Positions 1,087-62,119 of a stretch of DNA of 64,000 nt are shown one piece after another. Source of the stretch: Lama glama (taxonomy: Eukaryota); contig CM052824.1 in the NCBI GenBank assembly GCA_028534125.1, positions 42,718,001 through 42,782,000 on the forward strand, given 5' to 3'. Each line of letters starts with the position of its first letter. Positions within the stretch are counted from its first letter, which is position 1. Made by a program: the position numbers and the translations under genes. The notes beneath the pieces were generated by a model. That model was not told the DNA's origin. It saw nothing but the letters and a program-made list of their open reading frames with translations, and made no database searches.

Positions 1087-1186
1087 NNNNNNNNNNNNNN
1101 NNNNNNNNNNNNNNNNNNNNNNNNNNNNNNNNNNNNNNNNNNNNNNNNNNNNNNNNNNNNNNNNNNNNNNNNNNNNNNNNNNNNNN
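1087..1186. other. Assembly gap (100 N)
   Basis: Run of N. Confidence 0.99.
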
Positions 1187-16220: not shown

Positions 16221-17620
16221 CTCCACCTGATGTCTCTCGATCTCCTGAGCTGAGCCCATCTTTCTAGGTCACATCCAGGGCATCCCTGCCGATCCCTCCA
16301 CTCACTGAGGACCCACGATGGCTGCTTTGGCTGAAAATCATGATCACAGACATCCAGCCTCAGTTCTAGAGCAACAAAGAAGAACCTGCCTTTTCCCAGT
16401 GCGTGTGCAGGGATGAGCGTGTCTGCCCAGGGAGACCCCTGCCTAAGTGACAGTTGTATCCATGGGAGACCCCTCAGTCCTGCCCACAGACACTTTCCAC
16501 ACTCATTATTAGCAGGGACCCTGCTTCTCTCCCCTTCTGGGGCTGGCGGCCCTCCCAGGCCCACGCGGATGCTGGCAGTTCCCTCTCCGCTGCTCCGGCA
16601 TCATCACCTATCGATCATGATGACTGAGTGTCTAATGTCAGGGTCATTTGTGTATCTCCAAGGAGCAGAGGCCACGGGCTGTTCAAATCCCAGAGATTCT
16701 GGGGAGGGGAGGGAAATATCCAAATGAAAAGCAGAGGGAGTGAAGAGGAAATAGGACGTGCCAGGGAGATTAATCCGCTGCTCAGACATGAAAGAAATAC
16801 ATTCAATTATGTTTTATTGCATTTCATTTGAATGTACGCATCGTAGTTCGCTGCCTGCAAGCCTCGGATTACCCAGAGAGAGAGCACAATGAAATTTGAG
16901 AAAATAAAAACACAGACAGAACAGGCTCCTGAAATTGGAACCAATAAGACTGAGAAATAAAAGTCAGACTTGAGACAAAAGCAGCTACTTGGCACCAAGT
17001 CCCTCTCAGCACAGGCCCCAGGTCCCCATGGCTGCAGCCCAGAACCAGGAACCTTCAGCTAGATTGTTCTGATCCCCAGCATCAGGGAAAGACTCCTGAC
17101 AGAGTCAAAAGACCCAGGCTACCACCTTGAACCTGCCCCAACATGCTGTGTGACTTTGGGCAGGTCACTGTCCCTCTCTGAGCCTCATTCCCCAGGGGAG
17201 AAATGAGATGCCTGAACCAGATGCCCTTAAAGAATATGGGGAGCAAGAAGAAATCCCACAGGACCGGATACAGGTTAAAAGTAACCCCAGAGACATCCTT
17301 GGGGGCTGTGATCTCCCCAGAAGAGCCCTTTGGTGACCCTGTGCCAAAAGGTATGTCAGGTCAGCCAGACTGGACACAGTGTGGGAGGGAGGGATGGGCC
17401 CCTGGTGCCTCCCACCTCCCTTACCTCACCTTCTGTCTCCCCCATGAGTCCAGCCCTGTGCTCTGTCTTTCCACCATCAAAACTGCTCCCAGAAAAGGCC
17501 TTGGAAATCCTGCAGGTATCTGGTCCCCCAGGACGGCATCATCCACTTGCTAAGAAATGGGTACTAAGATTCTCAGGCATAAGAGAGAGAGTACTTTGGC
17601 AGAAGGGGAACATCCAGCTT

Positions 17621-18120
17621 NNNNNNNNNNNNNNNNNNNNNNNNNNNNNNNNNNNNNNNNNNNNNNNNNNNNNNNNNNNNNNNNNNNNNNNNNNNNNNNN
17701 NNNNNNNNNNNNNNNNNNNNNNNNNNNNNNNNNNNNNNNNNNNNNNNNNNNNNNNNNNNNNNNNNNNNNNNNNNNNNNNNNNNNNNNNNNNNNNNNNNNN
17801 NNNNNNNNNNNNNNNNNNNNNNNNNNNNNNNNNNNNNNNNNNNNNNNNNNNNNNNNNNNNNNNNNNNNNNNNNNNNNNNNNNNNNNNNNNNNNNNNNNNN
17901 NNNNNNNNNNNNNNNNNNNNNNNNNNNNNNNNNNNNNNNNNNNNNNNNNNNNNNNNNNNNNNNNNNNNNNNNNNNNNNNNNNNNNNNNNNNNNNNNNNNN
18001 NNNNNNNNNNNNNNNNNNNNNNNNNNNNNNNNNNNNNNNNNNNNNNNNNNNNNNNNNNNNNNNNNNNNNNNNNNNNNNNNNNNNNNNNNNNNNNNNNNNN
18101 NNNNNNNNNNNNNNNNNNNN
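17621..18120. other. Assembly gap (500 N)
   Basis: Run of N. Confidence 0.99.
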
Positions 18121-20310: not shown

Positions 20311-21079
20311 AATAAAAATGGAAGAGAGGAGTAACTCCAGCCATCAGCTGCCTTCCATGGGTTGGTTTTGCTGTACTCTGCACCCCTGCACTGCCCTGGC
20401 TTGGGGTTTCCTGGCTGGCGCGTGGCCATCTCTTGCTCCGCCTTGTAGACGGGCACACCCAGCCTGCACCAGCTCTCCTTCTGGGAAAATCACTTCAAGT
20501 TCAACCAGTGTGATTAGGGAGGAGGCGGGGGAGAGGGGACAGGCCAAGACAGTACTCCCCGCCACCACCGCACTGGGGACACGGGAGCCTCAGGAAGCAG
20601 GCTGGCAGTGGGTGACAAGTGTCCTCTTACTGCTCACTCATGCCTTACGATTTCATACAGTTTTGACATTTCTCCAGCTGAGCCAGCCTCCAGCTGCATG
20701 AAATCAGGCAGATAAAAGCCGGAGTAAAGGGCACCGAGACCTTGGCTCCCTTTCATTTGGCTGCCGGCTCGCCAGGGCCCAGCTGGCAGGACCACTGGGA
20801 CTGAGAGCGAGAAGAGAGGAAGAAGGAGGGAGAATTCCCTGAAATCCTGAAATCGGCCCCTTTGAGAGTCACGTGGTTCTGCTGCTGTCCTTGCACAAAA
20901 GGGGGACATCGGGGGCCCATCCAGCCGTGCAGAGGAGACCCCGGCCCAGGGCAGTGGATTCTGCTCAGCTCCCTGCACTGAACACCTACTGTGTGCCAGG
21001 CCAGGGTGGGCCCCGGGGACACCATCACAATGATGATAGTAAATCCCACACCTTCGTGCTCTCGGCGCCGGCTCTGTGC

Positions 21080-21303
21080 TCACGGCTCCACTCCAGTGGC
21101 ACCCACCCAGGGGACAGCTGGTAACGCCCAGAGACATTTCTGGTTTTCACACCTGGGGGCAGGTGGGGAGGGCTACTGGCATCGTGGACAGAGGCCAAGG
21201 ATGCTGTACCTATCCTACAATGAGGAGGGCAATACATAGCACAGCCCCCCAACAGGGAACTATCTGATCCAAATGGTGATAGGGCCAAGGTTGAGGACCC
21301 CAG
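21080..21303 (+). mobile_element. MER20 (hAT-Charlie) DNA transposon inserted into a MIR
   Basis: cagggacagctggtaacgcccagagacatttctggttttcac...gctactggcatc...gaggccaaggatgctg...gccaaggttgagga; MIR antisense pieces on both sides (about 20975-21005 and 21310-21490). Confidence 0.8.
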
Positions 21304-24193
21304 ATCTGGATTCATTTCTCATTTCAGCCTCACAGCTGTCCTTTGAAGTAGGGTTATTATCCTTCCCATTTTACAGAAAAGGCAACTGAGACCCATGGAG
21401 GCTACGTAAGTCATCCATCGTGACACCTCTGTGGAAAGGCGGAAGCAGGACTTGAACCAGGTCTGTCTGTGCCCAGAGTCTACACCCTGACCCCCTGCAT
21501 GGGGCTGCACCCTTAGCACACCATACAGAATCCTCCAGGAGCCTGGGTCCCGAGTTCAAGTCTCCGTGGAGCCTGATGGAGCAATTGGGGAGTCATTAGA
21601 CCTCTCCAAATTGGGAGCACTTTACTTTGTAAACTGGGCCCTTCATCCACGGCCTGGATGAGCATGGGGTGTGTGAACAGCCTCCCAACTTGTGAAAATG
21701 TTGGGGAAACAGAAGGGATCTTACATTCACTCATTTATTTACCAAGTATCCTTGGGTGTCTACTCTGTGCTTGACCTTGCACTAGGCACCGGACAACCAG
21801 TGAATAAGACACAGAGTCCCTGCTTTTGGGGCATTTAGGTTCCGAAAGGAACCTGGAGTCAGGTGGGGCCTCAAGTCCCAGCTTTGCTCCTCACAAGCCG
21901 CCAGCCCCTGGGCACTTTCCACCCGAGGGTCTCCCCTCCCCTGTAGGATGTGAGAGCACCCTCACCCCCTCCAAGGCTGTGATTGGCGATCAGATGAGAA
22001 AACAGGTGTAAGGCTCTCGGCGCAGACTGGGCGCTTAACAAGGGTGCAATGAACATTGTTTTTATTATCAAGGATGATGACACCACTGCTTGAATAAAAC
22101 GTTAAGCTGGGGTTGTAATTTCCTTCTCTTTTGAGACTTCTGCCCCCTGTTAGCATCCATTCATTTATTCCCTTCTTTCCCTCAGGGCCTTCCAGGGATG
22201 GGACCACCACGCCCCCAGCCTTAGCCGACTGGACCAGGACTGGACACCTGCCCCAGGCCAGACCAACCAGACCAACCAGGCTTTGATTTGGCCTGAGAGA
22301 CCTTGGCCAGTCCTTGCTGGTGGCTAGCGCAGGAGACAGACTCTGGCTCCATGGCCCACGTAGACAGGAGAGAAAGAAGGCTGGGCTGCAGAAGGAGGGC
22401 ATAGAGCGGGGATGACAGGAAGGGGGTCTGGCCATCTTTTCTCCTAGGCCCTGCTGCCCCCTCCCTCCCCACCAGGTCCCTGTGCTGCCTTCCCCCTCCT
22501 CCCCATTTGAGCAATTGGTTCCCAGCTCTGACTTAACCCAGCCCAAGTCTCCTGACCCTCCTGTTTCCCTAGAAACCACATCAGTGCCCTCCCCTCCCCA
22601 CAGCTGCTCTGCATCCCTCTGGGCCGCACACCCACATTGTGTCTTCTCTGGGGCCTGAGCTGGACCCCGAGCTGCCCAAGGGCCTGGGTCCTGGCGGGTC
22701 CTCAGCCAGTTTCCTGAAGGAAGGAGTGAATGCATGAGGGAAGGAGAATGGAACCAGAGGGAGGAGCCGGCCCGAGGGGTGGACAGACTTGCATTTGATG
22801 CTGGCTCCACTGCTCTGGCCTCCCTGCGCATCTGCCTCCCGCCGCCCGCAGCATGGGGAGGCGGGAGAACTGCAGGTGACCTGGGGAAGCTGCCCAGCAT
22901 ATGACAGCACCCAGTCAGGGCCATCTGAGGTGACATTGGTGGTCTTAACTTTTTCAAAATGTCTTTGCACTTTCCTCAGAGATTGCCAATCTAGCCTCAG
23001 CTTCCTTCTTCTTCCTAAACATCTTGCAATGCCCCACTCCTGGAGCCGTCTCTTCTGGGGACAGGAAACAGGAGTGCCCCCACCATTGTCAGAGGCTGTG
23101 GAGGAAAAGGGTGGGTTTAGACATAGCTGCGTGGATTCTTGGTTGGCTGTGAACGTGGACCTAATCACCCAGAGCGGGAAGCGGCATCCCAGCCTGGAGC
23201 CCCTGGGATCTGCCCCCTTCCCCCAACTGACGGGAAGAAGTGGCAAGGTGGGAGAAGAGGGGACACCTTCAGCATCTGCCCCAGGAGGTGCTCAGCCAAT
23301 GGATGGTTGACAGGTAGGGAAAGGGAGGGCCCCAGAGGAGAGGCTCAGCACCCGCTGAGGGGGCAGGGGTGGCCTCAGGTCCCTGCCCGTGTGGGAACCT
23401 CACTACTTACAGCTCTGGGGATGAAGGTAACCCTCTTCTGGCTGCAGAGAGAGCACAGCCCTTTAATGTAATGGGTTGGGCTTTTTCAACATTTCTAGCA
23501 GCTCATCGACTTGAGAAACATATTAACTATAAATTGTTAAAATTCTATGTATCTAAATCTGGCCTTTTCTGATGCTCAGATTTCAGCCCCACATCATGGA
23601 CCTGCCCCCGGCCCTCCATCTAATCAGCCAGGCTCAGAGGCCCTGACTCTCTCCTCTCAGGCTCACGGACTGGCCCTGAGAGGTGACTGGACGGGGCCCC
23701 TTGCTCTCCGTCCTCTGACACCAAAGGCTCTGAGCGCTCATCTGGGAGGGAAGAGGGCTGATGCAGAGAGTGGCTGGACCAGCTCCCAGTCTGGAGCCTT
23801 GGGCGGGTCGCTTCCCCTCCTTGGGCCTCGGCATCCTCATTTCCTCACCTCTGGAAAGGAGTTGACGGCTTCAGTGGGCGATGGGACAAAGTGAGAGGTG
23901 GCAGCCCAGAGCAGTCACTCCTTCGTGCCCACAGCTCCACCCTGCGAAGACAGAGCAGCGTGGAGAATCGTGTGGAATATTTTAGCTACAAGTGGTGGGA
24001 AAGTCAACCACCAAAATCAACCTAAGCAGAAAGGGAATATGTTTTGAACACGGTAATGGAAAAGTATGTGGGTGTCCAGACCCCCGCTCTGCTCCTGCAG
24101 CCCCTCCCCCTGCCCCCTGCCCCACCCACCCAGCTTAGGGTCTTGGCACCCTCACTTGCGCAGCATCCACAGACCTTGTCACCACAACAACAG

Positions 24194-24197
<4 letters not shown>

Positions 24198-24248
<51 letters not shown>
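24198..24248. repeat. (AAT)17 perfect microsatellite at a MIR tail
   Basis: Uninterrupted aat run, followed by MIR antisense end (catttagtgagtaccaactatgtgccag). Confidence 0.95.
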
Positions 24249-31880: not shown

Positions 31881-34800
31881 TGAGTGATGTATATACAGCA
31901 AATATACACGTCCCATTTGGCACCCAAACCTACAGTAAACGAGCACTTAATTTGAGCTCCCTGAGTCTACTTACGTTTGATGGTACAGAAGACAGCAGAG
32001 ATGGAGGGAGAAGGAAGCTTTCCTCCTCTGCAAATGAGGGCAATGCTAATAGTTTACATTATATAGCACTTCGTATATGTCAGGCGCTATATTTAATGTG
32101 TGTGTGTGTAAACATATATACACCTGCATATTCACTCATTTAATCCTTAGATACACCCCATAAGGTGGGTGCTGTCATTACTCAGTCCATTTTACAAGAG
32201 GAAACTGAGGCCCAGAGAGCTTATGTAACTCCGTAAAGATCAGTAAATGCAGAGCCAGATTGAAATCCTGGCCTCCTAGCCTGTGCTTCCAGCCCTGACG
32301 CTGTCCTGTCTCCAGTATGTCCTTGCAGATGACCTTGAAGGTTAACTGATATATGCCTGTAAAGGCTGAGTACATTCTTGGCATATAGTCAGTGTTCAAT
32401 ACTTGCTGGCTTAGGATCGGGCGCCACCCTGTATTCTTAAGAAACAGCAGTGACTGAGCCAGACATAGAGCCCTAAGGGGCTTCCAGTCCCATGGAGAGA
32501 ACAGAGGAGTGAATGTTCACAGCACAGAGGAGAGCTGGACTAGAGAAACTTAAGGACTGTAGGAATCCAAGGAGGGGCAGGGAATAGAGGTGGAAACAGC
32601 ATGTGCAAAGGCCTGGTGGTGAGGAGGCTGGCCTGGCCCCAGGTCCAGGGATGAGCAGGGGGATCCACTGTAGCAGGAGCTAAGTACGGAAGCAGAGAGG
32701 ATTCACATGGTAATTTGGGGAAGTTCCAGGACCAGACTGAGGAAGACAAGCTTGGCATCGGGGGAAGGACAGTGCAAAGCATGCAGGATCAGGGCTGGGC
32801 TCAGGGTTAGCTCCCCACTCTGGCACTCCATGAGCATGGGGGCTTCCACAGTGACAGGTGCGGGGATGTGGGGGAGAGCCCCCTCCACTCTCTTCCCAAG
32901 CCCCCTACTCTGGGGGTGATGCTGTAGACAGACCCTGGATCCGTCAGGCTAAGGGGGTGTCAGGCGCCCCCACCTTCCCCGGGCCATCCCCTTCCTGTCT
33001 CCTACCCCGCCCTCTGAGGCTGTTCCAGCACATTAAATGATGACGCTGCCTCATTTTGGAAGCTTCCAGCTCATTAACCAGTGAGGAGGGGATGAGTTAG
33101 GGATGAGTCCCAGGAGAGAGCCCTTGCCCGAGAGCCCTCCCCTGAGCTTCCAGCGGGGAAGGGCAGGGAATGGATGTTCAGTGAGCAGCTCTGAGACCCC
33201 CATCCATGCCTTCAGGAGGCCCGACAGATCTGCGTCCTACTCACCGGAAAGGGAAGCGCCACACGAGGCCTCCCTCACTGGGTCCCTTCAGCCCTTCTAG
33301 GCAGGACCGTGACATGCTGGCTCTAAGACGGCAGACTCTGGGCCTGCTTGGGAACCGGGTTGTGGGAGCAAAGCCCAGGCCCTCGCGGGGTTCCCCTGCT
33401 GGCCACACGTGCCCCCTGTCAAGGGCCCCTTCTCCCAGGCGGCCAGCAGGGCCCACCAATGCCTCCCTGGGGATGGACATAGAAGCGGCCTGGGCAGGAG
33501 CCTGGAGCAGGCCTGTGGAGGGGAACCCACTGTGGCGGGACCACAGGGTGATGGCGGCCAGATGCTGGCTCTGGGCTCTGTGTCTCTAACCTCCCGTTTC
33601 CTTTAGAGGGAGAGAGGGGTTGAGAGATCATGAAATCTGAGTAGGGGTTGGGGAGGGGGCATTATCCCTGGCCCCAGGCTGAGAATGTGTTCCATGTGCC
33701 TGGTCCCCCAGGCAGACACTGAATAGGTGCACAAGTCAGCCTCCTCCCTACCTCCCAGGAGGTAAAGACGTGAAACTAAGGGTAAGATGGCCTCTCGTTC
33801 CCCGACCCCCTGGATGCTGGGGAGGGCTGGACGGGTAGGGAGGAGAGGGAAGCTGTTCCTGGCGGGCGGACAGGATACGCAAAGGCTCAGATGTGGGAGT
33901 TCAGATGGCACAGTAAGGGGCTGGTGAGGAGACAGGCCTGGGTGAGACAGGACACGTGCTGAGGACAAGGGACGGAAGTCTGTGTGCACAGGGAGAGCAG
34001 CCTGTTGTGTAGGACTCGGAAGGCTGAGGACTCATGTCCTAACAGGCAGATTGGGTGGCTGCTGTCACCTCTGTCTCTTCGTCCCTCTTTGTCCTCTCCA
34101 CCCTCCTGCAAGGACGGCACGCAGACCCTGAAGACTGGCAGGTGTCCCGTGCTCAGAGGAGATGAGGCTGATCCGGCGCATCTGGGTAGGGAGGGATAAG
34201 AGTGTTTTTCGTCCTCATGCTCCTTCTGTGACCATCACTGCCATCATCTACAAGGGGTAAGTGAGGCTGGTGCCCAGGCCCACCTCCAGGTGGCTGTAGA
34301 GGCCTGGTGGGCATAGAGACACAGTGGCTGGGGACAAGACGGCCATCTTCCTGGCGGGTGGGTGGGTGGGTAGGTGTGTTGAGGGATGGGGTCCTGCTGG
34401 CTCCTCCTCTGAGGGTCAGTTCCAGCCTGGACGGGGGAGGGGGGGGCTGTGGGTGAAGCCTGTCGGGGGAAGACAGGACTCTGCAAGCGGAGTGGCCTGG
34501 CTGGAGCCCAGGTCTGGTGACTGCCGGGAACCAGTGTCCAGGGAAGGGCGTTCAGTGGTGGGGCTACTCCGGTTTGGAAAGGTGTTTACAAGGCATGCTT
34601 TCCCTAGTGCCCTTTACAGCGAGCTGCATGAATCCCAGTACATCTTGGAACCCAGAACTTAGAGGCATAGATTTCTGGAGCTTCATAAACCCAGGATTTG
34701 GGATTCTGAGACTCTCAGAAAATAGAATTATAAAGGCTCAGATCCCAGAAAGTGAGCGCTCCCAGGTAGTTCAGGGCATCTAGTCTAGCAAATTATCTTC

Positions 34801-37800
34801 AAAATGTGGGAGGAGAATTATTTTAAACCATTACCTTGGAGCGCAAACTTGGAGCAGCTAAAGGCTGAGCCTCTGGCTTCTGAGACCCCTCTGCTCCTCC
34901 CCTCATCTCACTTCCCACCAGGCATCCCCAGGACACTGTGGTCCAAGCCCCTTATTTGAGGGATGGAGATGCTGAGGCCCAGAGGGGGTTGGACCTGCCC
35001 AGGGCCACCTGGGGAGCCAGAGGCAGAGCCTGCTCCACCTGCTCCCCACCTGGGCTCTGGCTTCTGTAGCCCTGGCTGCTGCCAGGCTGGGCACACGTGG
35101 GCGGGTTGGCTCTGGGTCTCTGGGCTGCCAGGAGCAGATAAGCAGGATCCAGGAGAAAGACAAAGAACTAACCGTGCCTGAGGCCAGGCACAGGCAGCAG
35201 AGATCCTGGGAGCGGCGGGGGGAGGGGCCTGTCCCGGGCACTAGGCATTTCCCTGCCCTTCTCCCCAGACAGCTTCTCAAAATGAAATATTTAAAACCAT
35301 AATTTGTTGAGTAATTGCTCTGTGCTGGGAGCTCTGCACATATCACCCTTTAGAACAGCAGTTATTGAGCACCTGCTGTGTGCCAGGCGCTCAGGATCCA
35401 TCAGAGAACTTTCCCATCTCAGATCCTGCCCCATGAAGCAGGTCTGAGTCCCTTTTCACAGATGAGGAAACTATAACTAAGCGACTTACCCATGTCACTC
35501 GGCTGATGAGTGGCTGGGCCTGGCTGAACCCAGGCCCGACTGCAAAGCCCGTCCTCCTCACAGCCCAGCACATGAAGGGCCTCCCCACAGCAGGTGCACA
35601 GTAGGTGCTTCTAAGCAGCAAGGCTCTGTTCTCCCAACAGGGGACCTGCCTGCAGGGGTCCTGGGAGTTGACGCTCAAGGCAGTGGTGGTGGGGGGTTGC
35701 AGATAGAGAGGGCTGTAAGGGAGGGTGCAGATGTTGGAGGGTTGCAGGTGTTACCTGGTAATACTTAGCATCTACCCTCAAGGAGGCAGAATTGGCAAAG
35801 TGGAGGCAGGGGTAGAGGGAGGCTGCCATCCAACCTAGCAAAGAGTGCTGGTGTTCAGTCCTTCCCACAGAACCCTCACAACAACAACCCTAAGGAGAGG
35901 CACGGTGATCACCCCATTTTACTGATGAGGACACTGAGGCTCAGGGAGATGAAGGAACTTGTCAGGGGTCACGGGACCTGCAGAGCTGGGGTTACAGCCC
36001 AGGCCCCCATCTGACTCCACAACCTGCTGACGCTGCTCTATGTTCTGCCTGGTGTTCTCTGCCTCTGCAAACCTTCCAGAACATTCCCCTGCCCCTGTGC
36101 TTGTTCCCTCCTTGCATAGCAGGCTCAGGTGGCCCCAGGCCAGCCCAGGGGACAGTGGTCTCTCACCTCCTCCCCGGGCCTTAGACTTGCATCGATGTCA
36201 CCCACAGTCACACTGGCTTTTCCAGCAACCACACCCTCGTCAACTCACGTGGAGCCTCCAGCTCGGCTTTTACAGGAAATGCTGACAAGGCAGCTCTCCC
36301 TCCCCCTCGACTTCTCAGTTAATTTCAAACCTAAATGCAGAACTTTTTAGAGCGTCCTTATTACACCACATCTGCTTGATCTCACCCCGAGGTCAGGTGG
36401 AGGCCTCCGTGCGAGTGTCCCTCCTGGTCCTGTCCTTGTGGATCTGGGCGGTGGTGTTTGTGGTTCTTCTTCCAAGTAGACAGGAGGCTGGGCGGGAGCA
36501 GAGCCCTGTGGCAAACCGCTGGAGACCTCCTTCTCGGCCACTGTCCATTTGTGGCACCACTGTTCAGTCATCCTGACTAGCCCGTCCTCTGTCTGTCTCC
36601 CTGAGGCTTGCTGGTGTCTGACCTGTCCCTCCCCCCAACCGCCCATCCCCTCCCCGTCTCTCTCCCTCTCCTTGTCATTGTTCCTTTGGTGTCTCCTCCT
36701 CCACCCCTGCCTCCTTCTCTGTATCCTCCTAATTCCCTTGCCTCCTCTCTTCTCCCTCCTCACCTCCCTCCCTGCTCCACCTTCTCTCTTATGTTCATGG
36801 TCAAGGTCACAGCCACAGAGGCTTCTTCTCACCTTCCCCAGAAGGGTCTCTGGCCACAGTGAGGGTGATGCCCCCAGCCTGTGGGTGCGGCTGGGGGTAG
36901 GAGGCCTGGGCTTGCTGAGCCGTTTCTCGTGCAGACTGGGAAGGCCTTGCCCACCTCCGTGCACAGCAGCCTGGTCCCCATTGTGGACACAGAGCCATCG
37001 TCTTAACACAGGAAAGACATCATGGTCCTGGCAGGAGGGGCAGCCAGAGGGCATCCTGTGCCCCACTCCTCGACCCCGGCCCCAGGCAGCTCTTGAGGCA
37101 GGACAGGACGAGTGGAGGTTGTCTGGGAGGATCCCTTCACTGGCCGCTTCATCTCCACAGACGATCAGTGTCCCTGAGCCCACCTAATCTGGAAGTCCTC
37201 CCCCAGGTCTGCCCTAAGTCCTGCATGCTGTAGGGCAGAACAGGTGAACAGCTTGCTCATCTCAAGCCTTCCCTTGATCAGCCCCAGCTCTTCTCCATTC
37301 AGCGCAGATCCCAGTCATCTCCCCTTTGCCTGTTGCTCAGCCTCTCAGCCATGGAGCTGTGGCCCTTCCTCCCCAGCCCCTGTTCTCCTACCCACTTTCC
37401 TCCGAGATCCCTGGGGTCACAAATTGCCATCCTTATCTATAAAGACGGGCTGGAGGCCTGGGTGGTGTGGGGCCCTTGCCAAGGGTCCTCTCCAGAAGCT
37501 CTGCTCTCTTAGGGAGGGACCGGGGCATCTTCTCTTCTCCCTCCGCTGCTTCTGGTGTCAGACGTACTGGTGGGAGTGGACATGAGGTGGGCCCTGTGTG
37601 GGTTTCTGTTCCAGGTACCTTTGTGCCTGGTGATGGGACCAGGCCTGGTGACCTCTGGGGGGAAGTGGGCATGGGGCTGAGCAAGGTGGGAGCTCAGCCC
37701 CTGGCTGTGGCCAGACCCCTGGTCACCAGGGAAGAGTGAGGCTGGCCTCATGCAGCCCATCCCCACGGCTGGAGAAAAATAATTCAGATTATAAGTCTCT

Positions 37801-38219
37801 GGAGCAGACACGGAGAAAGGAGGAGGGAGACGGGGATATTTTGGGGCTGGAGCTGGGCAGCCAGATTCCTCATTTGGAGTGAAGTGGGGGTGACTATCTG
37901 CTATGACACCAAAACAAAACCAGGGTGAACTTTGTCCCCGTTTCCTGGGTGGGGTCCCAGCCCAAAGTTACTGCTGCTCCATCCCTTGCCCACAGGAAAG
38001 GTCCCTGAGGCAGGGACCCCGCCCAGTCCTGCCTGGGGTGGCAGCGGCTCCCTGGGTCTGGTGAGCGAACGATGGAGGCAGAGTCCCCTCAGCATCCAGA
38101 GCTGCTTCTAGACTGGCTCCCGGCCTCAAGGCCCCCTGACTGCCCGGACTCCCCATCTACATCTGGGTGCTGTCCTGCCACACTTAGCACCCACATCTCC
38201 CATCAACCTTCCTCTGCAG

Positions 38220-38377
38220 GAAGCCAGTGAACATGACCAAGGCCACGGTCCTCTACCGCCAGGAGAAGACCCACATGATGAGCACCATGGACCGCAGCTT
38301 CACAGACCAGAGCACCCTGCAGGAGAACGAGCGGCTGGGCCTCTCCTTCATGGATGCCCACAGCTGCAACCCCCGGG
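38220..38377 (+). pseudogene. PTPRU: Isolated exon homologous to the PTPRU juxtamembrane exon (probable duplicated gene fragment)
   Basis: Translates to [52 protein letters not shown](G), matching recalled human [58 protein letters not shown]; acceptor ccttcctctgcAG (38218-38219), donor GTgagt (38378); 158 bp, phase 2 to phase 1; no other PTPRU exon seen. Confidence 0.85.
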
Positions 38378-38729
38378 GTGAGTGCCTGCCCCTTCCCTGT
38401 GGCCCCCAGGCACTCCTCCCCCAGAGCCAACGGCACAGTGCCCCGCATCAGATGGTTCTGTAACATCCAGAACCAGAAGTGCTAAGCATCCTGCTGGGTA
38501 CCAGCACTGGCCCTGGGAATACAGAGAAGGCACAGCTGGTGAGCTGTACTGTGCACTGGAGGAGCCTGCAAGGGGTTGTACAAAGGTAAGGGAAACACAA
38601 GATCAAATGTAACAACTGTCAAAGAGGAGCTGCAAGGTGACGCTGTCTGAACAGAGGAGATCAGAGCAGGCTCACCGTTTACTGAGGACCTGCTGTGTGA
38701 GAGGCGGGGGATCCAGGGGCTGAGAGGGA

Positions 38730-38910
38730 GTGATCTGGAGCCACCCAGACCTGGACTTGTCTCTCAGATCCCCTTAGCTGTGTGACCCGGGGCAAATCGC
38801 TTACCCTCTCTGGGTGTCTGCTTCCTCCCCCGTAAAATGAGGTAGATATCATAGGGCTGCTGTGAAAACGAAATGAGACGGTACGTGTCAACCCCTTGGC
38901 ACCGTGCCTG
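38730..38910 (+). mobile_element. MIR SINE
   Basis: cttagctgtgtgacccggggcaaatcgcttaccctctctggg...gtaaaatgagg. Confidence 0.75.
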
Positions 38911-38989
38911 ACTCCAGGAAAAGCATGGGAATTGTGTGTATGTGCTGGGCTCTGAGCTGGGAGCTTTTTATATACTACTTCACTAACTC

Positions 38990-41750
38990 TTTTCCTTTTA
39001 TGATGTACTATTGTATTTACTTAAAAAATTCTATATAACAAATGTGTAAATTGAGAAGCATAATAATCAAATAAACTGCTGTGACCCAGAGCTTGGGAAG
39101 TAGAAAGTTTCCAAGAGAACTGAAGCCTCTGGGTGACCCTCCCCAGCACATCCTCCCCCGTCCCCTGGAGGGGACCACCGTCTTGCATGTCGAGTTTATC
39201 CTGTTCCCCAGTTTTCTTTGTAGTTTGACCACGTATGTCTGAACCACCAAGCACATTATCAGTTAGTTGTGCTTCTGTGTGACCTTTATGAAAATGACCT
39301 CACAAGGTATGAGGTTTCCTGTGCCTTGATTCTTTTTTCACTCAACGTTGTTTCTAGACGTGGCCACGTAGATGGACGTGCATCTGTGGTTCCTTCGTTT
39401 TACGGACGGTATTTCACCATCTGAATATATCACAATTATGCGTCCCTCCTCTCTCCGTGGATATGAGTCGTTTCCAGTTTTTGTTTGGCTTTTTGGTTGT
39501 TTTGTTTGTTTGTTCTTACAAATAAGGCTTCTGTGAACACTCTTGTCCGAGCCTCCCGATGCACCTGCACGGCCGAGTCTCTGGGGTGTATTCCAGAAGA
39601 GGGATTGCTGACTTGCGGGGGAGGGGGGTGTTTGTTCAACTTCACAAGGCAGTGCCAAATTGTTTTCAAAAATGACTGCGGTTACTTCCACTTCCAGCAG
39701 CGATGTGTCAGAATTCCCATTGCTCTAGATCCAGACCCAAATTTGTCAAGCTCCTACATTTTTGCCGAAACAGTAGGTGTAATATGGTGAGTCCGTGCTC
39801 AGATTTTTCATTTCCCTGATTAATAATGAAACTAAACATATTTTCAAATGATTATTGGCTTTCGGGTTTCTTCTGTGAAATGCCCGTTTGTGTCTTTTAT
39901 CTAATTTTCTACTGTTTGTTTGTCACCATCCTAATGATTTTTAGGAGTCCTTTATCCATTTCAGATAATAGCCATTTATTGATTTCCATGCTGCAAATGT
40001 CTTCTCCCGCTTTGAGACTTGGCTTTTCACTCTATTTGTTGTCTTTGGATGAGCACAAAGTCTTTATTGGAATTTAGACTTTTTTTTGATCTTTTCTTTT
40101 TTTGCTTTGCACTTTTAGTGCTTTGGTAAAGAAATCCTTCCCTACCCCAGGTCATAAAAATAGTCTCTATTTTCTTCTAAAATATTTCAAGCTTTGCATT
40201 TCACGTTCAAATCTTTATCCATCTGGAATTGATTTTTGTAGTGCTCTGAGTTGGAGATTTGATTTTCTTTTCCCATATGGATCAACAATTGTTGCAGTAT
40301 AGATCACCCCGGGTCTACAATGACAATTCTGTCATATATTGACCTTCCTTATGCGTGTGAGCCTGTCTGTGGACACTCTGATTTCTTCCAGCGTGCTAAT
40401 ACTAATCAATGTATATTTATAAGTCTTGATATCTGGAATTGCAAGTCTCCTGCCTTGTTCCCCAGGTGTTTCTTGGTTATTTTTTCCCCCTATTCTTTTC
40501 CGTATGAATTTTATAATCAGCTGTTCAAGTTCCCTGAAATACGCCAAGGAATTTTGATTGGAATTTTATTAAATCTGTGGGACTATTCAAGACACTGTCA
40601 TCTTTACAACATTGAGTCTTCTCATCTATGAATATGATATATCTCTCTACATTTAGGTCTTGAGTACCTTTCAATAATTTTCTCCAAAAATGTCTTGAAC
40701 TTTTTTTTTAGACATATTCTTGTGCCTCTTACATTTTTTATTGTTACTGCAAGTGGTATTCTTTAAACTAGGATTTCTGACTCTTGCTGGTAAATGGAGA
40801 TACAAATGATGTTTCTATGTTAACCTTTTATCTATATACTTTTTTGAGTCTCTTATTTATTCTAACAATTTGTTTGTAGTTTCTTTTGGATTTTCTATGA
40901 GCAGAGTTAAAGAATCTTAGAATAATAAAATTTTATTTTATTTTTCTTATCCATTAGACTTTCATCTCATTTTCTTGTCTTATTGCACTGGCTCTGGTTG
41001 AGAAATTGTAACCTCCAACACAATATTGAGTGGAAGTGGTGATAGGAGCCATCTTGTCTTGTTTTCCTGATTTTAAAGGAAATTCTTCTACATTTCAATG
41101 TATGCCATAGACTTGTGATAGAAACATTTTATCAAGTCAGAAAATTCCCTTCTCTTCTAGTTTGCTAAGAATTGTTTTGTTGATGGGTGTTAAACTTCCC
41201 AGAAGCATATATTGAGAATAATCTGTTAATATGGCAAAAATCATTTACAGATTTTTTTCTAATGTTAGTTGATCTTTAAATTTCTCAGGTAACTCAACCC
41301 AATCATGATGTGTGATTATTTTTTCAGTAATTTAATAGTGTTTATGACTTTTAAAGTTATGATCATGAGATGTATATAAACTGTAATCTTTCTTTGTTTC
41401 TTGTAATACCTTTGTCTGATTATTGGTATCAGGAGTATAGTGGTCTCATAAAATTTATTGGGAGCTGTCCCTTTTTGTCCAATTTCTGGAATTTAGGGAT
41501 GATATATTCCCTGGAAGTTTGGTAGAAGTCATTGTAAAATAATCCAGGCCCGGCATTTTTCTTTTTGGAATGATTTTAAATTTCTAATATAATTTATTTA
41601 AATTAGCATAAAGCTATGCAGACATCTGTTTCTTTTTAGTCACTTTAAGTAAGTTATTCTTTTCTAAGAAGATATCCATTTAATCTAAGTTTCAAATGTA
41701 TTAGCATACAATAACTCATTCTATTATGCTGTTATTTTTTTGATACCCCT
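38990..41750 (-). mobile_element. Ancient L1M LINE-1 (3' UTR plus degraded ORF2), antisense
   Basis: T-rich; minus-strand ORF 40332-40547 YFRELEQLIIKFIRK...LAIPDIKTYK is L1 ORF2-like; gtgccaaattgttttcaaaa...ttccagcagcgatgtgtcagaattccc. Confidence 0.88.
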
Positions 41751-42670
41751 ATTAAATCTTTCAAAAGATTTACATTTTACATGAGGGGATAAAAAAGCTC
41801 AGGGAAAGGGAATTACTTGCTCAGGCCATGTATCCAGAGAGTGACAGAGCCAGGATTTAGAACTAGGTATTTCTAAGGGGCAAACACCTGCCATTCCTAC
41901 TGCACCGTGTTAGGCTTTGAAGAATGAGTGAGATTTGGACAGAGATTTATGGGAAGGGAAGGCATTCACAGCTGAAAAATAGCCCATCTAAGAACATACA
42001 AGTGGGCAAATGAGAAAGACATGGAAAGACCTGACTGGTATGGAGACTGGGCTGTGTTTTCAGGTGGTGAGGAGGACCATGGGGAAGGAGGGTGGGGAGG
42101 GGCAGTCTCTGTGTGAGTCTTGCTGGTGTGTTCAAAGAAACAGGAGACACAGGCTTTGCCGCCAGGAATCTCAGCATCTAGTTGGAAAGACATGACTGTC
42201 TTAAGGGAGGCAGGATCGGGCTCACTGCCAGATGGGTGGGGTGAATACAAGCCAGAGGACAATGGAATAATATATTTTAACTTCCGAAAGAGAAAAAAAA
42301 CCTGTAAGCTGGAACTCTGTATGCAGCAAATTCCTCTCCCTAAATGTAGGCAAATTAAAGACTTTTCAAGGAAACAAAAGTTGGGAGAATTTAACACCAG
42401 CAGATCTGGATTATATTAAGTGTTAAAGAAAGTTCTTCATATTGAAAGAAAATTATAACAAATGGAAAGCTGGATCTACACAAAGGAACGAATAGAGCCA
42501 GAAATTGTTAATCTGTGGATAAATACAAAATAGTGGGGAGTTCTGTTTCCATCTGAGATGTAGAAACTTATAAGAGAATGCCATTCCCATACTAAAATGA
42601 GCAAAAGTCAGATAATTCACTAAGTCATAACTTTTCCTCACTCTTAACATAGACCCAAGTTTACAAGACA

Positions 42671-43320
42671 TGTTAGGCAGAATCCAAAGATGTCACCCTC
42701 AAACCCACCAAGATTCTAATCTCCTGGATATTCACCCAAACACCAATTTAGTTACTGCTGTGAAGAGACTTTGCAAATGGAATTAAAGTTACTAATCAGC
42801 TGACTTTAAAACAGAAAGATTATTCTGGATTATCCAGGTGAGCCCAAGCTAATCACATGGGCCCTTATAAGCATAAGAGGAAGGCAGAGAGATTCAGCAG
42901 AAGAAGAAGAGGGCAGGTTGAATGCATGAGAGGAACTTGACCCCTTGCTGCTGGAGGGGGCCACATGGAAACTAGGAGGACGAAGGCAGGCAGCCTTTAG
43001 GAGCAAAGCCATGCCTCTCATGGACAGCTGACAAACTAACAGGGACCTCAGTCCTACAAACACAAGGAAATTAATCTGGTCAACAACTTGAAAGAGCATG
43101 GAAGAGGACTCATCTCCAGAGCCTCCTGAAGGTGCCTCTACCCGAAGGTGACTCCAAGGTGCCAGTTTTAGCCCTGATACTTTTATTTTGGTTGTTGAAA
43201 CCCAGAGAAGAGAATAACTGAGCCACAAAGTGCTGGACTTCTTACCTATAGAATTGTGAAATAATAAATGAGTGGTAATCACCAAATTTGTGGTAATTTG
43301 TACAACCAGAACAGAAACCT
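42671..43320 (+). mobile_element. MLT1D/E-type MaLR LTR nested in L1
   Basis: tgttaggcagaat...actgctgtgaagagactttgcaaatggaattaaagttactaatcagctgac...ggattatccaggtgagcccaa...tgtggtaatttgt. Confidence 0.85.
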
Positions 43321-45842
43321 TTAAAAAAAAAAAAAAGATAAACAGGTAACTGGAATTCCAAAGGATGACAAGTCCCTTTGAGGAAGCAGGCACACATGAA
43401 TTGTTTTATCTTTTGTAGAGCATGAATGAAGATGTTAGCCACCATAAAATCTGGAAGAAAGAAAACAGCTAATTTTTAATGAGTTTTTTAAAGGTTTGAT
43501 ATGGGCTAAAAAGACAGTTTAGAATACCTGGGAACCCCAGCCATGAGTGTACAGTAAGAAAAGCCCATCACTGGAGGAATTCAAAGTCTGTGGTGCACAG
43601 AAAATAGAGCACCAGCAAAATCCATCTACACTCACCTCTTTCCTAGTTATGACTCAAACCACCACACTACTGTCTTAAAAGAAAAATAAGTATGCTTGTC
43701 TCTGGACATAAATACTATTTACCTCCATCTCTACTGTTATACACACAATGTCCAGCATTTGCTCAAAAACTGTAAGACAGAGATCTCCAAAAAATCAAGG
43801 AAAAGCAACCTATCATCAAGAAGAAAGCAGTCATTTGATAGGATCAGATTTAGAGATGATCCAGAGGTTGGAATTTTTAAGCATAGATTTTTAAATATCT
43901 ACATTAAAATAACTAGTTTAAAGATGTAGTGAGAAAGGTGGAAAATGTACTTGAATAGATGAGAAATTTCAGCACCAAGAAGAAAATTATAAAGAAAAAA
44001 GTTCAATCATGTTGCAAGAAATCATTTTACAAAATATTATCAGAGATAGATGATTATTTTAGCAGATGTACCAGAAGACTGCACAGCAGATAAAAGAATC
44101 AATGAACTTGAAATAGATCAGTCATTAGAAATTGAGAAACAAAAATAAACTGAGAAACAAGGAGACAAAAAGTTGAAAATGCAGATCAGAGCACCCAAAA
44201 GCTGCAGTCTAACATGTAAATAATTTGAGGGAGCCTTAGAAGATAAAGAGATAGGAAAAGAAATACGTAAAGAGACTGTGGCCAATAAATTTTCCAAATT
44301 TAATAAAAGATGAGCCATAAATCTAAGAAAAAGCTCAAAGAACCTCATATAAGACACACACACACACCCCCAAAACACACAAGTAGACATACATCACCTA
44401 GATACATCATGGTCAAGCTTCTGAAAACCAGAGATTAAAAATTTTTGGAAGCAGCCAGAGAAAAAGAAAAATTACGTACAGAGGAACAAAGATAAGGACA
44501 CAGCTGGCTTCTTATCAGAAACTCTGTGGTCCCAATGGAAATGTACTCTTTTACATTTTTAAAGTAATATAAAGAAAAAAAAACTTGTCAACTAATCATT
44601 CTACACCCAGAAGAAATATCTTTCAGGAGCAAAGATAAAATAGGAGTTTTCTCAGATTAACAAAACTAAGAGAATTTATTATGAACTTACCTACACTATA
44701 AGAAATGTCAAAGGAAATTCTTCAGACAGAAGGATCATGGTACTTGATGGAAATTTAGGCCTACCTACATTAAAAAGAGCCCCAGAAATACTAAAAAGTA
44801 GGGTAAAATAACTTTTTTGTCATTTTTCATCTCTTTCAAAGATAGTTGGCTCTCTAAAGAGAAAATAATGACCCGTACCAGGGATTTAGAATATATGTAA
44901 TAAGCACAACCTATGACAAAATTAGCACAAGGAATGAGGGAAGAAATGGACATGTTCTATTATAACACTCTTACACTATAGGTTAAGAAGCATATTATAT
45001 GAAGGTAGACTGTGGTAAGTTGAAGATGGATATTGTAAATGCTAAGGCAACCACTACGAAAATAAAAGAGGTATTTCTAATAAGCCAATAGTGAAGATCA
45101 AATGGAATAATAAAAAAAAAATCACTCAATTGATCCAAAAGAAGGCAGGAAAAAAGAAACAACAAAGAACAGATAAAACAAAAAGGAAACAAAAAGTGAG
45201 ATGGCATGTTTAAATTTAACCATGTTAGTAATTCCACCAAATTTAAATGCTCTAATTCTGGAAAAGGCAAAACCAGAGGAATAGAAAACAGATTAGTGGT
45301 TGAGGGGCTGAGGGTTAGGGAAGGGGCCACAGTAAAGCAGAAGGGAACTTTTTAGAGCAATAAATGTTTCAATATATTGATAACGGTGGTGGTTTCATGA
45401 TTATATGCATTTGCCAAAACTCATAAAACTGTAAAACAAAGAGGAGAATTTTTTGGTATACAAACTATGCCTCAATAAATCTTTTTTTTTTAAGTGTAAT
45501 TAGTCCAACACCCCAAATGAAAGAAAAGGATCTTCACGTTGTTAAGAAAAGTTAAAGAAGATCTAAATAAATAAAGGGATACCGCATGTTCATGGCTCGG
45601 TATACGATGATGCTCCCAGAATTTATCTATAGATTCAACACAATACCCATCAAACTCCCAGGGGGATTTTTTGATGAAATTGACCAACTGGTTCCAAAAT
45701 TCATATGAAAAGGAAAGGACCCAGAGAGGCAAAACCATTTTGAAAGAGAATAAATTTGAATTCTTACTACCTGATTTTAAGACTCAATATAAAGTTACAG
45801 CGAGTGATATAATGAGGTGCTGCTGTGATAGACATAGAGATC

Positions 45843-46100
45843 TATATCTAGCAATACTGTAACATATACTTGCAAGCTGTTAGTAGAGTAGCTCTTAAAT
45901 GCTTTCACCGCAAAAAAAAAAAAAAAAAGGCAATTAGGTGACGTGATTGAGGTGTTAGCTAACCCTACTGTGGTAATCATCTTGCAATACATATGTAAGT
46001 GCATCAAATCAACATGTTCTGTACCTTAAACTTACACAATTATATATAGCAATTACATCACAATAAAGCTAAAAAATTTAAAAAGAAGCTTCAAAATATA
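45843..46100 (+). mobile_element. Short L1MA9/10-like 3' end nested in an older L1, with TSD
   Basis: gtagctcttaaatgctttcacc...ggtgttagctaaccctactgtggtaatcat...accttaaacttacacaat...aataaagct; TSD atagacaYagagatc at 45828-45842 and 46101-46115. Confidence 0.8.
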
Positions 46101-47239
46101 ATAGACACAGAGATCAATGGAACAGCATACAGTTCAGAAATAGATCCACGCATAGATGGCCAACTGACTTTCAACAGAGGTATCAACATAATTCAAAGAG
46201 AAAGAATATTCTTTTCAACAAATAGTGTTGGAGCAACTGGATAGCCATCAAAAGAAAAAAAAAAGAATGTAAACCTCAACTCCTCTCACCACACACACAC
46301 AAATTAAATAAATCACAGACCTAAATAGAAGAGCTAAAACAATAAGATTTCTGGAAGAAAATATAGGAAAGATCTTTGTAACCTTGAATCAGATAAATAT
46401 TTCTTAGGACAAAAACATACAAATATTAAAAAGAAAAGAATTTGGGCATCATCACAATTTTTAAATATTGGTTCTTTGAAGGACATACTCAAAGAAATGA
46501 AAATTCAAACCACAGACTAGAAACTGTTTCCAAATCAGGTATCTGATAAAATATATAGAACTCCTACATAATATATAAAAACTCATATACACATGTGTGT
46601 ATGTATATAAACTCTTACAACTCAATAATAAGATAAACATCAATTAACAATGGGCAAAATTTCTGAATAGACACTTCACTGAAGAAGACAGACAGATGGC
46701 AAATAAGCACCTGAAGGATCCTCAACATTATAAGTCACTGGGGACATGCAACTTATAACCACAATGAGACTCAAGCATGGCCAAAATTAAGAAGATTACA
46801 CTACCAAGGAGAGGATGCAGAGCCACCAGGAACCTCATACGTTGCTAGTGGGTGTGCAAAATGGGATAGTGCTTTGAGAAACAGTTGGGCAGTTTCTTAC
46901 AGAGTTAAGCACACATTTTCTATACAACCCAGTAATTTCTGGACATTTACCAAGAAAAAAAAAACATGTGTCTACACACAGACTTGGGCGAATTTCATAA
47001 CAGCTCTGCCCACAACAGTCGCAGACTGATGAATGAATAAACATAATGTGGTGCAATCCACACAGCAGAATACCACCCAGCCATGAAAAGGGATGAGCTG
47101 CTGATACACAGAACATCATATATGAATCTCAAAAGCATTATGCAAAGCATTCTATAAGCACAGGTCAGCCTCCACAATAAAGAGTTGTTTGGTCTAAGAT
47201 AACAATATTGCTAATATTGAGAAATGCTGGTCTATCGGC

Positions 47240-47480
47240 CACAGTAGGGAGTTTTTATGTTTAATGTTGAGGATGTTCTTTGCAGGTTTTGAGCAGGAAA
47301 GCGACGTGATTTGACTTATATGACCTTAAAGTAATCACTGTGGCTGCTCAGTAGAGCAGAGGCTATTGTGGGGAGAGGGAGTCAGGGAGACCAGATGAAG
47401 GAATTACATAAGTCCAGGTGAGAAACGGTAGTGGCTTGGATGTGGGTGGGGTAGAGGAAGGCATGAGAGGTGGTCACTCA
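47240..47480 (-). mobile_element. L2 fragment (its right part forms the start of the left inverted-repeat arm)
   Basis: ggttttgagcagg...atcactgtggctgct...agggagaccag...gtccaggtgagaaacggtagtggcttgga. Confidence 0.7.
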
Positions 47481-47655
47481 TATAAGAAGCTGTTGAAGAA
47501 GGAACCGGACACTCATCCTAAAAAGATTCTCAAGTAGACACAAGCATCCTCCAACTTCAGAAGGGTTGTCATGTGGACCAGAAGTTGGTACCATTCCGGG
47601 GGCCCCAAAGATCCAGGAACATGAGTGCAGCCAATAAAGCACTTTGCAAAGACAA
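47378..47655 (+). repeat. Left arm of long inverted repeat
   Basis: Reverse complement of 48228-48515; 15 substitutions in the first 259 nt plus a 10-nt indel near the inner end. Confidence 0.97.
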
Positions 47656-48227
47656 GACCTCCCTGGATGTCCGTGCTAGACCTGTTCCTCCCACTGATGC
47701 CAAAAGACACAGTGAGCTCTGGTATAACGAGCCACCTTTTTCATCAAATTTTAAGTGTGGAAAAGATCTTAATGGTCTTCTAGTTCAACTCTCTCTTTGA
47801 TACTTGAATTCCTTCAACAAACACGTACACTCAACAAAATTATTGTCACTAAAAACATCTTCACCATCATCATCATCATCTTCATCACAATATCATCACC
47901 ACCATCACTGACATTCTCATCATTTGTCAAGTACCTGCTTTATGTCAGGCAGAGTGCTGGTTGCTTTACTTACTTGGCTGCACTGAATTCTCACAACAGT
48001 GCAACAATACAGGTAGTGATCTTGATTTACAGAGAGGGGAAAGGAGGCTGGAAAGAGTGAAGTGGCCCGAGGCAGCACAGATAATAGAAGAAGGAGGCTT
48101 TAAGCCAGATCTCTTGATCACAGAGGCAAAACTGTCCACTACCTTGCTGCCCTGAAAGCTGATCTGTGCTTGTGCCCCTCCACCAAGAAGCATGCTCTCC
48201 ATTTGGTCAGAACTGCCAGAAAGGCCT

Positions 48228-56101: not shown

Positions 56102-56137
<36 letters not shown>

Positions 56138-56160
56138 TGAATGTGTGTGTGTGTGTGTGT
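56102..56160. repeat. (TG)n microsatellite, interrupted
   Basis: tgtgtg run broken by agtgaa. Confidence 0.95.
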
Positions 56161-61260: not shown

Positions 61261-62119
61261 TGAAGTAGGGTTCCTTCTGNNNNNNNNNNNNNNNNNNNNN
61301 NNNNNNNNNNNNNNNNNNNNNNNNNNNNNNNNNNNNNNNNNNNNNNNNNNNNNNNNNNNNNNNNNNNNNNNNNNNNNNNNNNNNNNNNNNNNNNNNNNNN
61401 NNNNNNNNNNNNNNNNNNNNNNNNNNNNNNNNNNNNNNNNNNNNNNNNNNNNNNNATGATGGCCANNNNNNNNNNNNNNNNNNNNNNNNNNNNNNNNNNN
61501 NNNNNNNNNNNNNNNNNNNNNNNNNNNNNNNNNNNNNNNNNNNNNNNNNNNNNNNNNNNNNNNNNNNNNNNNNNNNNNNNNNNNNNNNNNNNNNNNNNNN
61601 NNNNNNNNNNNNNNNNNNNNNNNNNNNNNNNNNNNNNNNNNNNNNNNNNNNNNNNNNNNNNNNNNNNNNNNNNNNNTTGAAGCAGCATGGATGTTCCTGG
61701 AGAATGTCATTCTAAGCGAAGCAAGCCAGAAAGAGAAAGAAAAATATCATATGAGATCTCTCATGTGTGGAATCTAAAAAAAAATTTTAAATGAACATAA
61801 GTACAAAACAGAAACAGACTCATAGATATAGAATACAAACTTGTGATTACAAAGGGGGCAGGGGGTGGGAAGGGACAGACTGGGATTTCAAAATGTGTAG
61901 ATACTGACAGGCATATGCAGAATAGATAAACAAGATTATACTGTATAGCACAGGAAATACATACAAGATCTTGTGGTAGTTCACAGCAAAAAAAATGTGA
62001 CAATGAATATATATATATATATGTTCATGTATAATTGAAAAATTGTACTCTACACTGGAATTTGACAGAACATTGTAAAATGACTATAACTCAATAAAAA
62101 TGTTAAAATAAAATAAAAT
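61261..62119 (+). mobile_element. Young lineage-specific (artiodactyl/camelid) L1 3' end, partly in an N gap, with TSD
   Basis: ORF2 end catggatg...ctaagcgaagcaagccagaaagagaaagaaaaatatcatatg, 3' UTR, aataaa and (taaaa)n tail; TSD aaaactta(c/a)ctctc at 61247-61260 and 62120-62133. Confidence 0.85.
61280..61677. other. Assembly gaps (61280-61455 and 61466-61677) separated by a 10-nt island
   Basis: Runs of N around atgatggcca. Confidence 0.99.

Follow-up and report, generated by a model that had tools for sequence, protein, structure and literature searches.

The window analysed here is the whole stretch of 64,000 nucleotides from Lama glama (GenBank assembly GCA_028534125.1, contig CM052824.1, positions 42,718,001 to 42,782,000 of the forward strand), and all coordinates below are counted from its first letter. 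Two exon copies of PTPRU, the gene of a type IIB receptor tyrosine phosphatase, lie on its plus strand. The first, referred to as TM', is a decayed copy of the transmembrane (TM) exon and covers positions ~34104 to 34256. The second, referred to as JM', is a copy of the juxtamembrane (JM) exon at positions 38220 to 38377; it is open, with seven amino acid replacements and no insertions or deletions. The two are separated by a copied intron of 3.96 kb (34257 to 38219, plus strand), and a further copied intron extends downstream of JM' (38378 to 39123, plus strand).

Structure and identity of the juxtamembrane exon copy

JM' is 158 bp in length, and the frame that begins at position 38221 runs through 52 codons without a stop; the remaining two frames are unlike PTPRU. 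On the upstream side, a polypyrimidine tract with an AG acceptor can be read from the sequence at 38180 to 38219 (plus strand), and this pyrimidine-rich tract ends in cag (...ccttcctctgcag). Over the final 15 bases it is almost identical to L001, a 1540-bp metagenome contig that carries an intact JM exon. On the downstream side, the donor GTGAGT is read at 38378 to 38383 (plus strand). An earlier, sequence-only reading of this DNA had claimed a real exon with splice sites at 38220 to 38377, and the acceptor AG, the GTGAGT and the open frame are all present as it described. That reading had also placed no N gap near the exon; the runs of N in the window (1087-1186, 17621-18120 and 61280-61455) are indeed all far from JM', the nearest being the second and third.

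A search with the JM' peptide returned 88 matches in a representative protein library of 1.84 billion entries. The best of these are the PTPRU JM exon in genomic open frames from many vertebrates, and two long fish PTPRU proteins in the same library are matched as well. Among the search matches, those of PTPRU type outrank a more divergent family. Compared with the PTPRU protein of Camelus ferus (P0193), the JM' peptide is 85% identical (E = 1.6e-22), which bears out the PTPRU juxtamembrane identity proposed earlier. Seven of the 52 residues differ between them, namely N>L, A>T, V>M, D>N, G>S, Y>C and S>N, and the replaced residues are invariant from fish to mammals. All of these replacements except G>S, which is additional, had been listed in the earlier reading. 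One sequence, P0242, was left out of the JM' comparisons; it has a hominid-type exon ending and may be human. No Pfam domain is found on either copied exon, TM' or JM', no CpG island occurs anywhere in the 64-kb window, and a PDB sequence search gave chance matches only.

The transmembrane exon copy and the search for other PTPRU exons

TM' lies ~4 kb upstream of JM' on the same strand and is recognized by collinear matches spread over three frames, by its resemblance to a gene model in camel and by its donor. The collinear pieces, relative to the camel TM exon, are the part before the helix, the start of SEEM, the GG..V..L core and the II.KG end, and they are connected through at least four frame switches and interrupted by stop codons. 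TM' ends in GG followed directly by the donor GTAAGT (34257 to 34262, plus strand). These two bases of a Gly codon fit the phase of JM', the first G of which, at position 38220, completes the codon.

A frameshift-aware alignment of the TM exon to both strands of the window has its best score at this place and ends at 34257, with a score of 46 versus 41 for the next-best location. The best single piece of TM' is weak at the protein level (E = 0.58). Positions 34162-34257 match exon 1 of the P0011 model from Camelus ferus at 87.5% identity, with damage in common. TM' is assigned to the PTPRU TM exon on the strength of its collinear pieces, its donor and the model in camel, and the score margin is modest. 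Over 19 residues, Kyte-Doolittle hydrophobicity peaks at 0.46 in TM' and at 2.99 in the true exon, and the helix is lost. Frameshifted and encoding no membrane helix, TM' is dead.

These observations overturn one part of the sequence-only reading, which had described JM' as an orphan exon whose transmembrane neighbour is absent: a decayed TM' is present at ~34104-34256 with a donor in phase. A scan of the window for PTPRU peptide motifs gave no match to TM', because TM' is too decayed. Simple repeats account for two other signals in the window. A (TAA)n microsatellite of ~17 units at 24197-24248 produces spurious poly-Ile matches to the TM query, and two (TG)n runs at 56102-56159 explain a minus-strand open frame of His/Thr repeats.

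Further PTPRU exons were sought with tblastn, using as queries fish PTPRU (one comprising TM-JM-D1-D2 and one comprising ectodomain-TM-JM), a joined-exon model from armadillo and full-length camel PTPRU. Including runs with a small word size, JM' is the sole PTPRU match below E 1 in the window. Other PTPRU exons, as well as PTP-domain and fibronectin sequences, are undetectable in the 64 kb by sensitive tblastn and frameshift-aware alignment. The frameshift-aware aligner likewise gives no standout peak where the next two exons, the previous exon or the third exon of the camel model are expected. No MAM, Ig or fibronectin exon is found in the 34 kb upstream, and no D1 or D2 exon in the 25 kb downstream. 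The absence of downstream exons, which had been claimed before, is thus confirmed with camel, fish and armadillo PTPRU queries. Self-comparison reveals no second copy of the TM'-JM' block within the window. As read from the DNA, the copied unit is one of two exons, consisting of TM', the 3.96-kb intron and JM'.

Intron homology and DNA-level duplication

The origin of the block is addressed by its introns. The first 305 bases of L001 resemble a SINE of the Bov-A2 type, and L001 is for that reason taken to be ruminant host DNA. Its alignment to window positions 38012-39123 spans both borders of JM' at 79.3% identity and includes 173 mismatches and 16 gap openings. Identity is 91% in the exon blocks and mostly 77-83% in the intron blocks, two of which fall to 58-66%, and the splice cores of JM' and L001 are the same. 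Within the intron between the copied exons, homology to the ruminant intron covers 38012-38219. Since the Bov-A2-like SINE sits directly upstream in L001, the break at 38012 is attributed to an insertion in the ruminant rather than to an edge of the duplication. This upstream intron flank is also matched by open frames from other mammals. On the other side of JM', the downstream intron aligns with L001 to near the end of that contig. Positions ~38750-38920 of this intron consist of an old MIR-like repeat; it is common to L001 and is therefore older than the camelid-ruminant split.

About 1.7 kb past JM', the G+C content falls from 0.50-0.59 to 0.33-0.40 (window 40000-48000). The copied GC-rich block may end at this drop and repeat-rich DNA may begin there; homology is mapped to 39123.

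The stretch from 34000 to 39900 was also compared with sequencing runs by word sharing. Sixteen DNA runs contain 86-90% of its sampled words, and the runs with words of this stretch come from three organisms and 11 studies in all. With so many DNA runs containing the words of the block, its sequence is not the product of a one-off assembly. In four RNA-type runs, 5-12% of the words sampled from this 5.9-kb stretch are present, a share that may come from repeats or unspliced RNA.

A processed retrocopy was considered and is ruled out by the intron flanks, by the splice sites and by the 3.96-kb intron, which separates TM' from JM' and so leaves them unjoined, not fused as in a retrocopy. Copies that do look processed exist elsewhere. 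The 'PTPRU-like' sequences P0028/P0229 of Dasypus novemcinctus and P0268 of Pseudorca crassidens carry a degenerate JM fused to the next exons, and they are probably processed copies and a phenomenon separate from this locus.

Parent gene and copy in Camelus ferus

In Camelus ferus, both an intact gene and a damaged copy are represented. The intact PTPRU is EPY87938.1 (P0193), which has normal TM and JM exons, and the small model EPY87939.1 (P0011) consists of a decayed TM copy and a JM copy. The two have consecutive accessions on one scaffold of 1,221,714 bp and are therefore considered to be neighbours in the camel. As the damage in TM' is common to the window and P0011, the block in the window is taken to be the orthologous camelid fragment, and that part of the block must predate the split of the two species. 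By analogy with Camelus ferus, the llama block probably adjoins an intact parent gene. The JM copies tell a different story, with three replacements in the camel copy, seven in the window and none common to both, though the TM' damage is common.

That the window contains PTPRU itself, its exons spread over very long introns or separated by a misassembly, is very improbable. Intact splice sites and intron homology are what such a gene would have, and the assembly gaps at 17621-18120 and after 61280 would leave room for a break. However, the TM exon present here is unable to encode a membrane helix, seven replacements affect residues conserved among vertebrates, and the 34 kb upstream and 25 kb downstream hold no further PTPRU exon. 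The same damaged unit stands beside an intact gene in camel, and many independent runs contain the sequence.

The claim that JM' is part of a decaying, DNA-level partial duplication of PTPRU is well borne out by the intron homology, the 3.96-kb intron, the camel pair and the dead TM'. The accompanying suggestion that it is available for exon shuffling found no evidence in its favour.

Copies and gene models in other species

Decayed JM copies have been annotated as 'hypothetical protein' in Ovis aries, Ovis ammon and a hybrid, and as models named 'unnamed protein product' in Rangifer tarandus. A 147-aa 'PTPRU' of Manis pentadactyla derives from a JM copy, and Saguinus oedipus (tamarin) has a partial model. 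The upstream exons attached to the JM copy differ among the camel, sheep, reindeer and pangolin models. The first exon of the reindeer model P0005/P0089 maps to window 21018-21191, inside interspersed repeats; the surrounding region (20970-21300) consists of a MIR-like stretch followed by a second interspersed repeat, of the '...atcctacaatg...' type common in laurasiatherian genomes. In view of the differing upstream exons and the placement of the reindeer exon in repeats, the models look like ab initio predictions seeded by one strong exon, and the reindeer model is probably an artefact of this type. Being repeat DNA, the match at 21018-21191 was down-weighted as evidence of synteny. Another piece of reindeer sequence (window 22212-22388) and pieces of pangolin sequence (16492-16939) match unique-looking DNA with order and strand conserved, and these matches suggest a single old locus.

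Decay of the juxtamembrane exon and possible gene conversion

JM' and the exon of L001 differ at 16 of 158 bases, with eight differences being nonsynonymous and eight of synonymous type. The eight nonsynonymous changes result in seven replacements, all of which lie on the window's side of the comparison with L001. The exon has 10 CpGs in L001 and six in the window. CpG decay had been claimed for two replacements: A>T does fall at a CpG of L001, and V>M would do so only if the parent codons were GCC GTG. A rough pairwise dN/dS between JM' and L001 is ~0.3 (8 of ~118 nonsynonymous sites and 8 of ~38 synonymous sites), and dN/dS on the window branch is ~0.65, which is indistinguishable from 1.

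The expected extent of decay was estimated by a rough simulation that used a branch of 0.095 per lineage derived from the introns, CpG transitions ten times faster than other changes, the observed indel rate and the ruminant exon as ancestor. Under neutral evolution since the camelid-ruminant split, 13.4 amino acid changes are expected and the probability of seven or fewer is 0.019. The probability of an open frame with the AG and GT kept is 0.15. Simulated branch lengths of 0.03-0.06 substitutions per site fit the JM' data.

A similar pattern is seen in ruminants. Within the exon, the decayed sheep copy P0012 differs from L001 by eight amino acids and one codon; the 92 intron-encoded codons that follow are ~97% the same. 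P0222, which is decayed with two replacements, equals the intact P0228 over 109 intron-encoded residues. In these comparisons, L001, P0237 and P0228 are unnamed contigs that are taken to represent the parent gene because their exon is intact. The JM copies also carry lineage-specific lesions, namely a codon deletion in sheep and a 12-nt deletion in P0243 and P0244. In P0041, a ruminant ENA contig, a Bov-A2-like SINE is located inside the JM copy after ...EDEQLGL, and P0222 has the same two replacements without the SINE. Every artiodactyl JM copy seen is open with both splice sites kept, an openness that is partly a matter of ascertainment, as the library consists of open frames only, and that selection would also give.

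The effective age of JM' appears to be younger than that of the duplication, and we infer that interlocus gene conversion by the parent is the most plausible cause. JM' would then look fresh because the exon is short and its effective age is below that of the duplication. Across lineages, the JM region of the copy seems to have been repeatedly near the parent and then to have decayed separately in each, for which conversion offers the simplest account; this reading comes from protein-level comparisons of unnamed contigs.

Two other accounts of the same pattern must be weighed. In the first, each lineage acquired its copy, or copied the exons anew, independently and recently, and no old shared duplicate was refreshed by conversion. 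The near-identity of the introns in ruminant copies and intact exons would fit such events, as would the fact that camel, window, sheep and reindeer share no JM replacements except at CpG-type sites. However, the TM' damage common to the window and Camelus ferus is older than their split, and the reindeer and pangolin pieces that match 22212-22388 and 16492-16939 in order and strand suggest one old locus. Separate copying is therefore considered unlikely.

In the second account, JM' is a working exon under selection that is spliced into a lineage-restricted transcript, encoding a small protein with a free PTPRU juxtamembrane segment or forming part of a non-coding RNA, with TM' as a dispensable leader. 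The rough pairwise dN/dS of ~0.3 relative to L001 points in this direction, as does a count of amino acid changes below the neutral expectation since the camelid-ruminant split, but all seven replacements lie on the window's branch, where dN/dS of ~0.65 is not distinguishable from 1, and they alter residues invariant from fish to mammals. The frame of JM' is open and its AG/GT splice cores match those of the intact exon, yet deletions and a SINE occur inside the exon in other lineages, and the intron identity in ruminants points to copying rather than to protein selection. Models exist in five or more species, but the attached upstream exons differ from one species to the next, one of them falling in interspersed repeat DNA. 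The 5-12% of sampled words present in four RNA-type runs may reflect repeats or unspliced RNA. The exon is also without a CpG island or a domain. On balance, a working exon is doubtful, and a decaying copy refreshed by its parent is preferred.

Discussion

The preferred explanation consists of three elements. The block would be a non-processed partial duplicate of PTPRU comprising the TM and JM exons, the intron between them and 0.75 kb or more of the intron downstream of JM. Interlocus conversion by the parent gene would overwrite the JM region, and decay driven by CpGs would then start anew in each lineage separately. Finally, the strong splice sites and the open frame would lead gene finders to build small 'hypothetical proteins' around JM' in several genomes. 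The reading as a whole, a dead non-processed PTPRU fragment with a JM' that has perhaps been refreshed by conversion, is given a probability of roughly 0.75.

As a gene, the TM'-JM' block appears dead, having neither ectodomain nor phosphatase exons and a TM' that is frameshifted and without a helix. Since it lacks the MAM, Ig, fn3 and phosphatase exons and has lost the TM helix, the block cannot make the receptor. Nothing in the window points to another function: Pfam domains are missing from the copied exons and CpG islands from the whole stretch, the helix is destroyed and conserved residues are replaced. It is conceivable, and improbable, that JM' has been kept usable across artiodactyls by selection or repeated conversion, either spliced into a transcript that provides a free JM segment or acting as a reservoir of variants that conversion returns to PTPRU.

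Several known systems help to place the block. The functional gene, with its order MAM-Ig-fn3-TM-JM-D1-D2, has a JM exon whose sequence, phase and splice sites match those of JM', and the llama block differs from it in being without the MAM, Ig, fn3 and phosphatase exons and in having its TM helix destroyed. Processed PTPRU-like copies (armadillo XP_004473104 and false killer whale P0268) likewise contain a degenerate JM, but there the JM is fused straight to the following exons, whereas the llama block keeps its introns. The closest likeness is to duplicated pseudogene fragments that lie beside their parent. Like them, the block keeps an intron, its flanks and its splice sites, most of the gene is missing, one exon is frameshifted and the camel copy is located beside an intact parent. 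Unlike the usual fragments of this kind, JM' is far better preserved than TM', and the small unit has been modelled separately in several mammalian orders.

Interlocus gene conversion has been treated in general (PMC3966223), and GBA1 and GBAP1 form a pair of parent and pseudogene that is homogenised by this process (PMC12064688). As in such converted pairs, the PTPRU copy seems closer to its parent than its age suggests, the introns of decayed and intact ruminant versions are near-identical and decay seems to restart in each lineage. For the PTPRU copy, conversion is deduced from protein-level comparison of unnamed contigs.

A full-text literature search returned no description of a PTPRU partial duplicate. 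The block belongs to a common class, that of duplicated pseudogene fragments, here probably beside its parent, and its hint of concerted evolution with that parent is of mild interest. Spurious annotations in camel, sheep, argali, reindeer and pangolin, either 'hypothetical protein' models or short models of 'PTPRU', are explained by such copies. In practical terms, artiodactyl reads or variants that are mapped to the PTPRU JM exon may derive from the paralogous fragment. If the conversion reading is true, the locus would be a compact and clear example of a gene evolving in concert with a fragment of two exons, and there would be a slight chance of damaging variants moving back into PTPRU.
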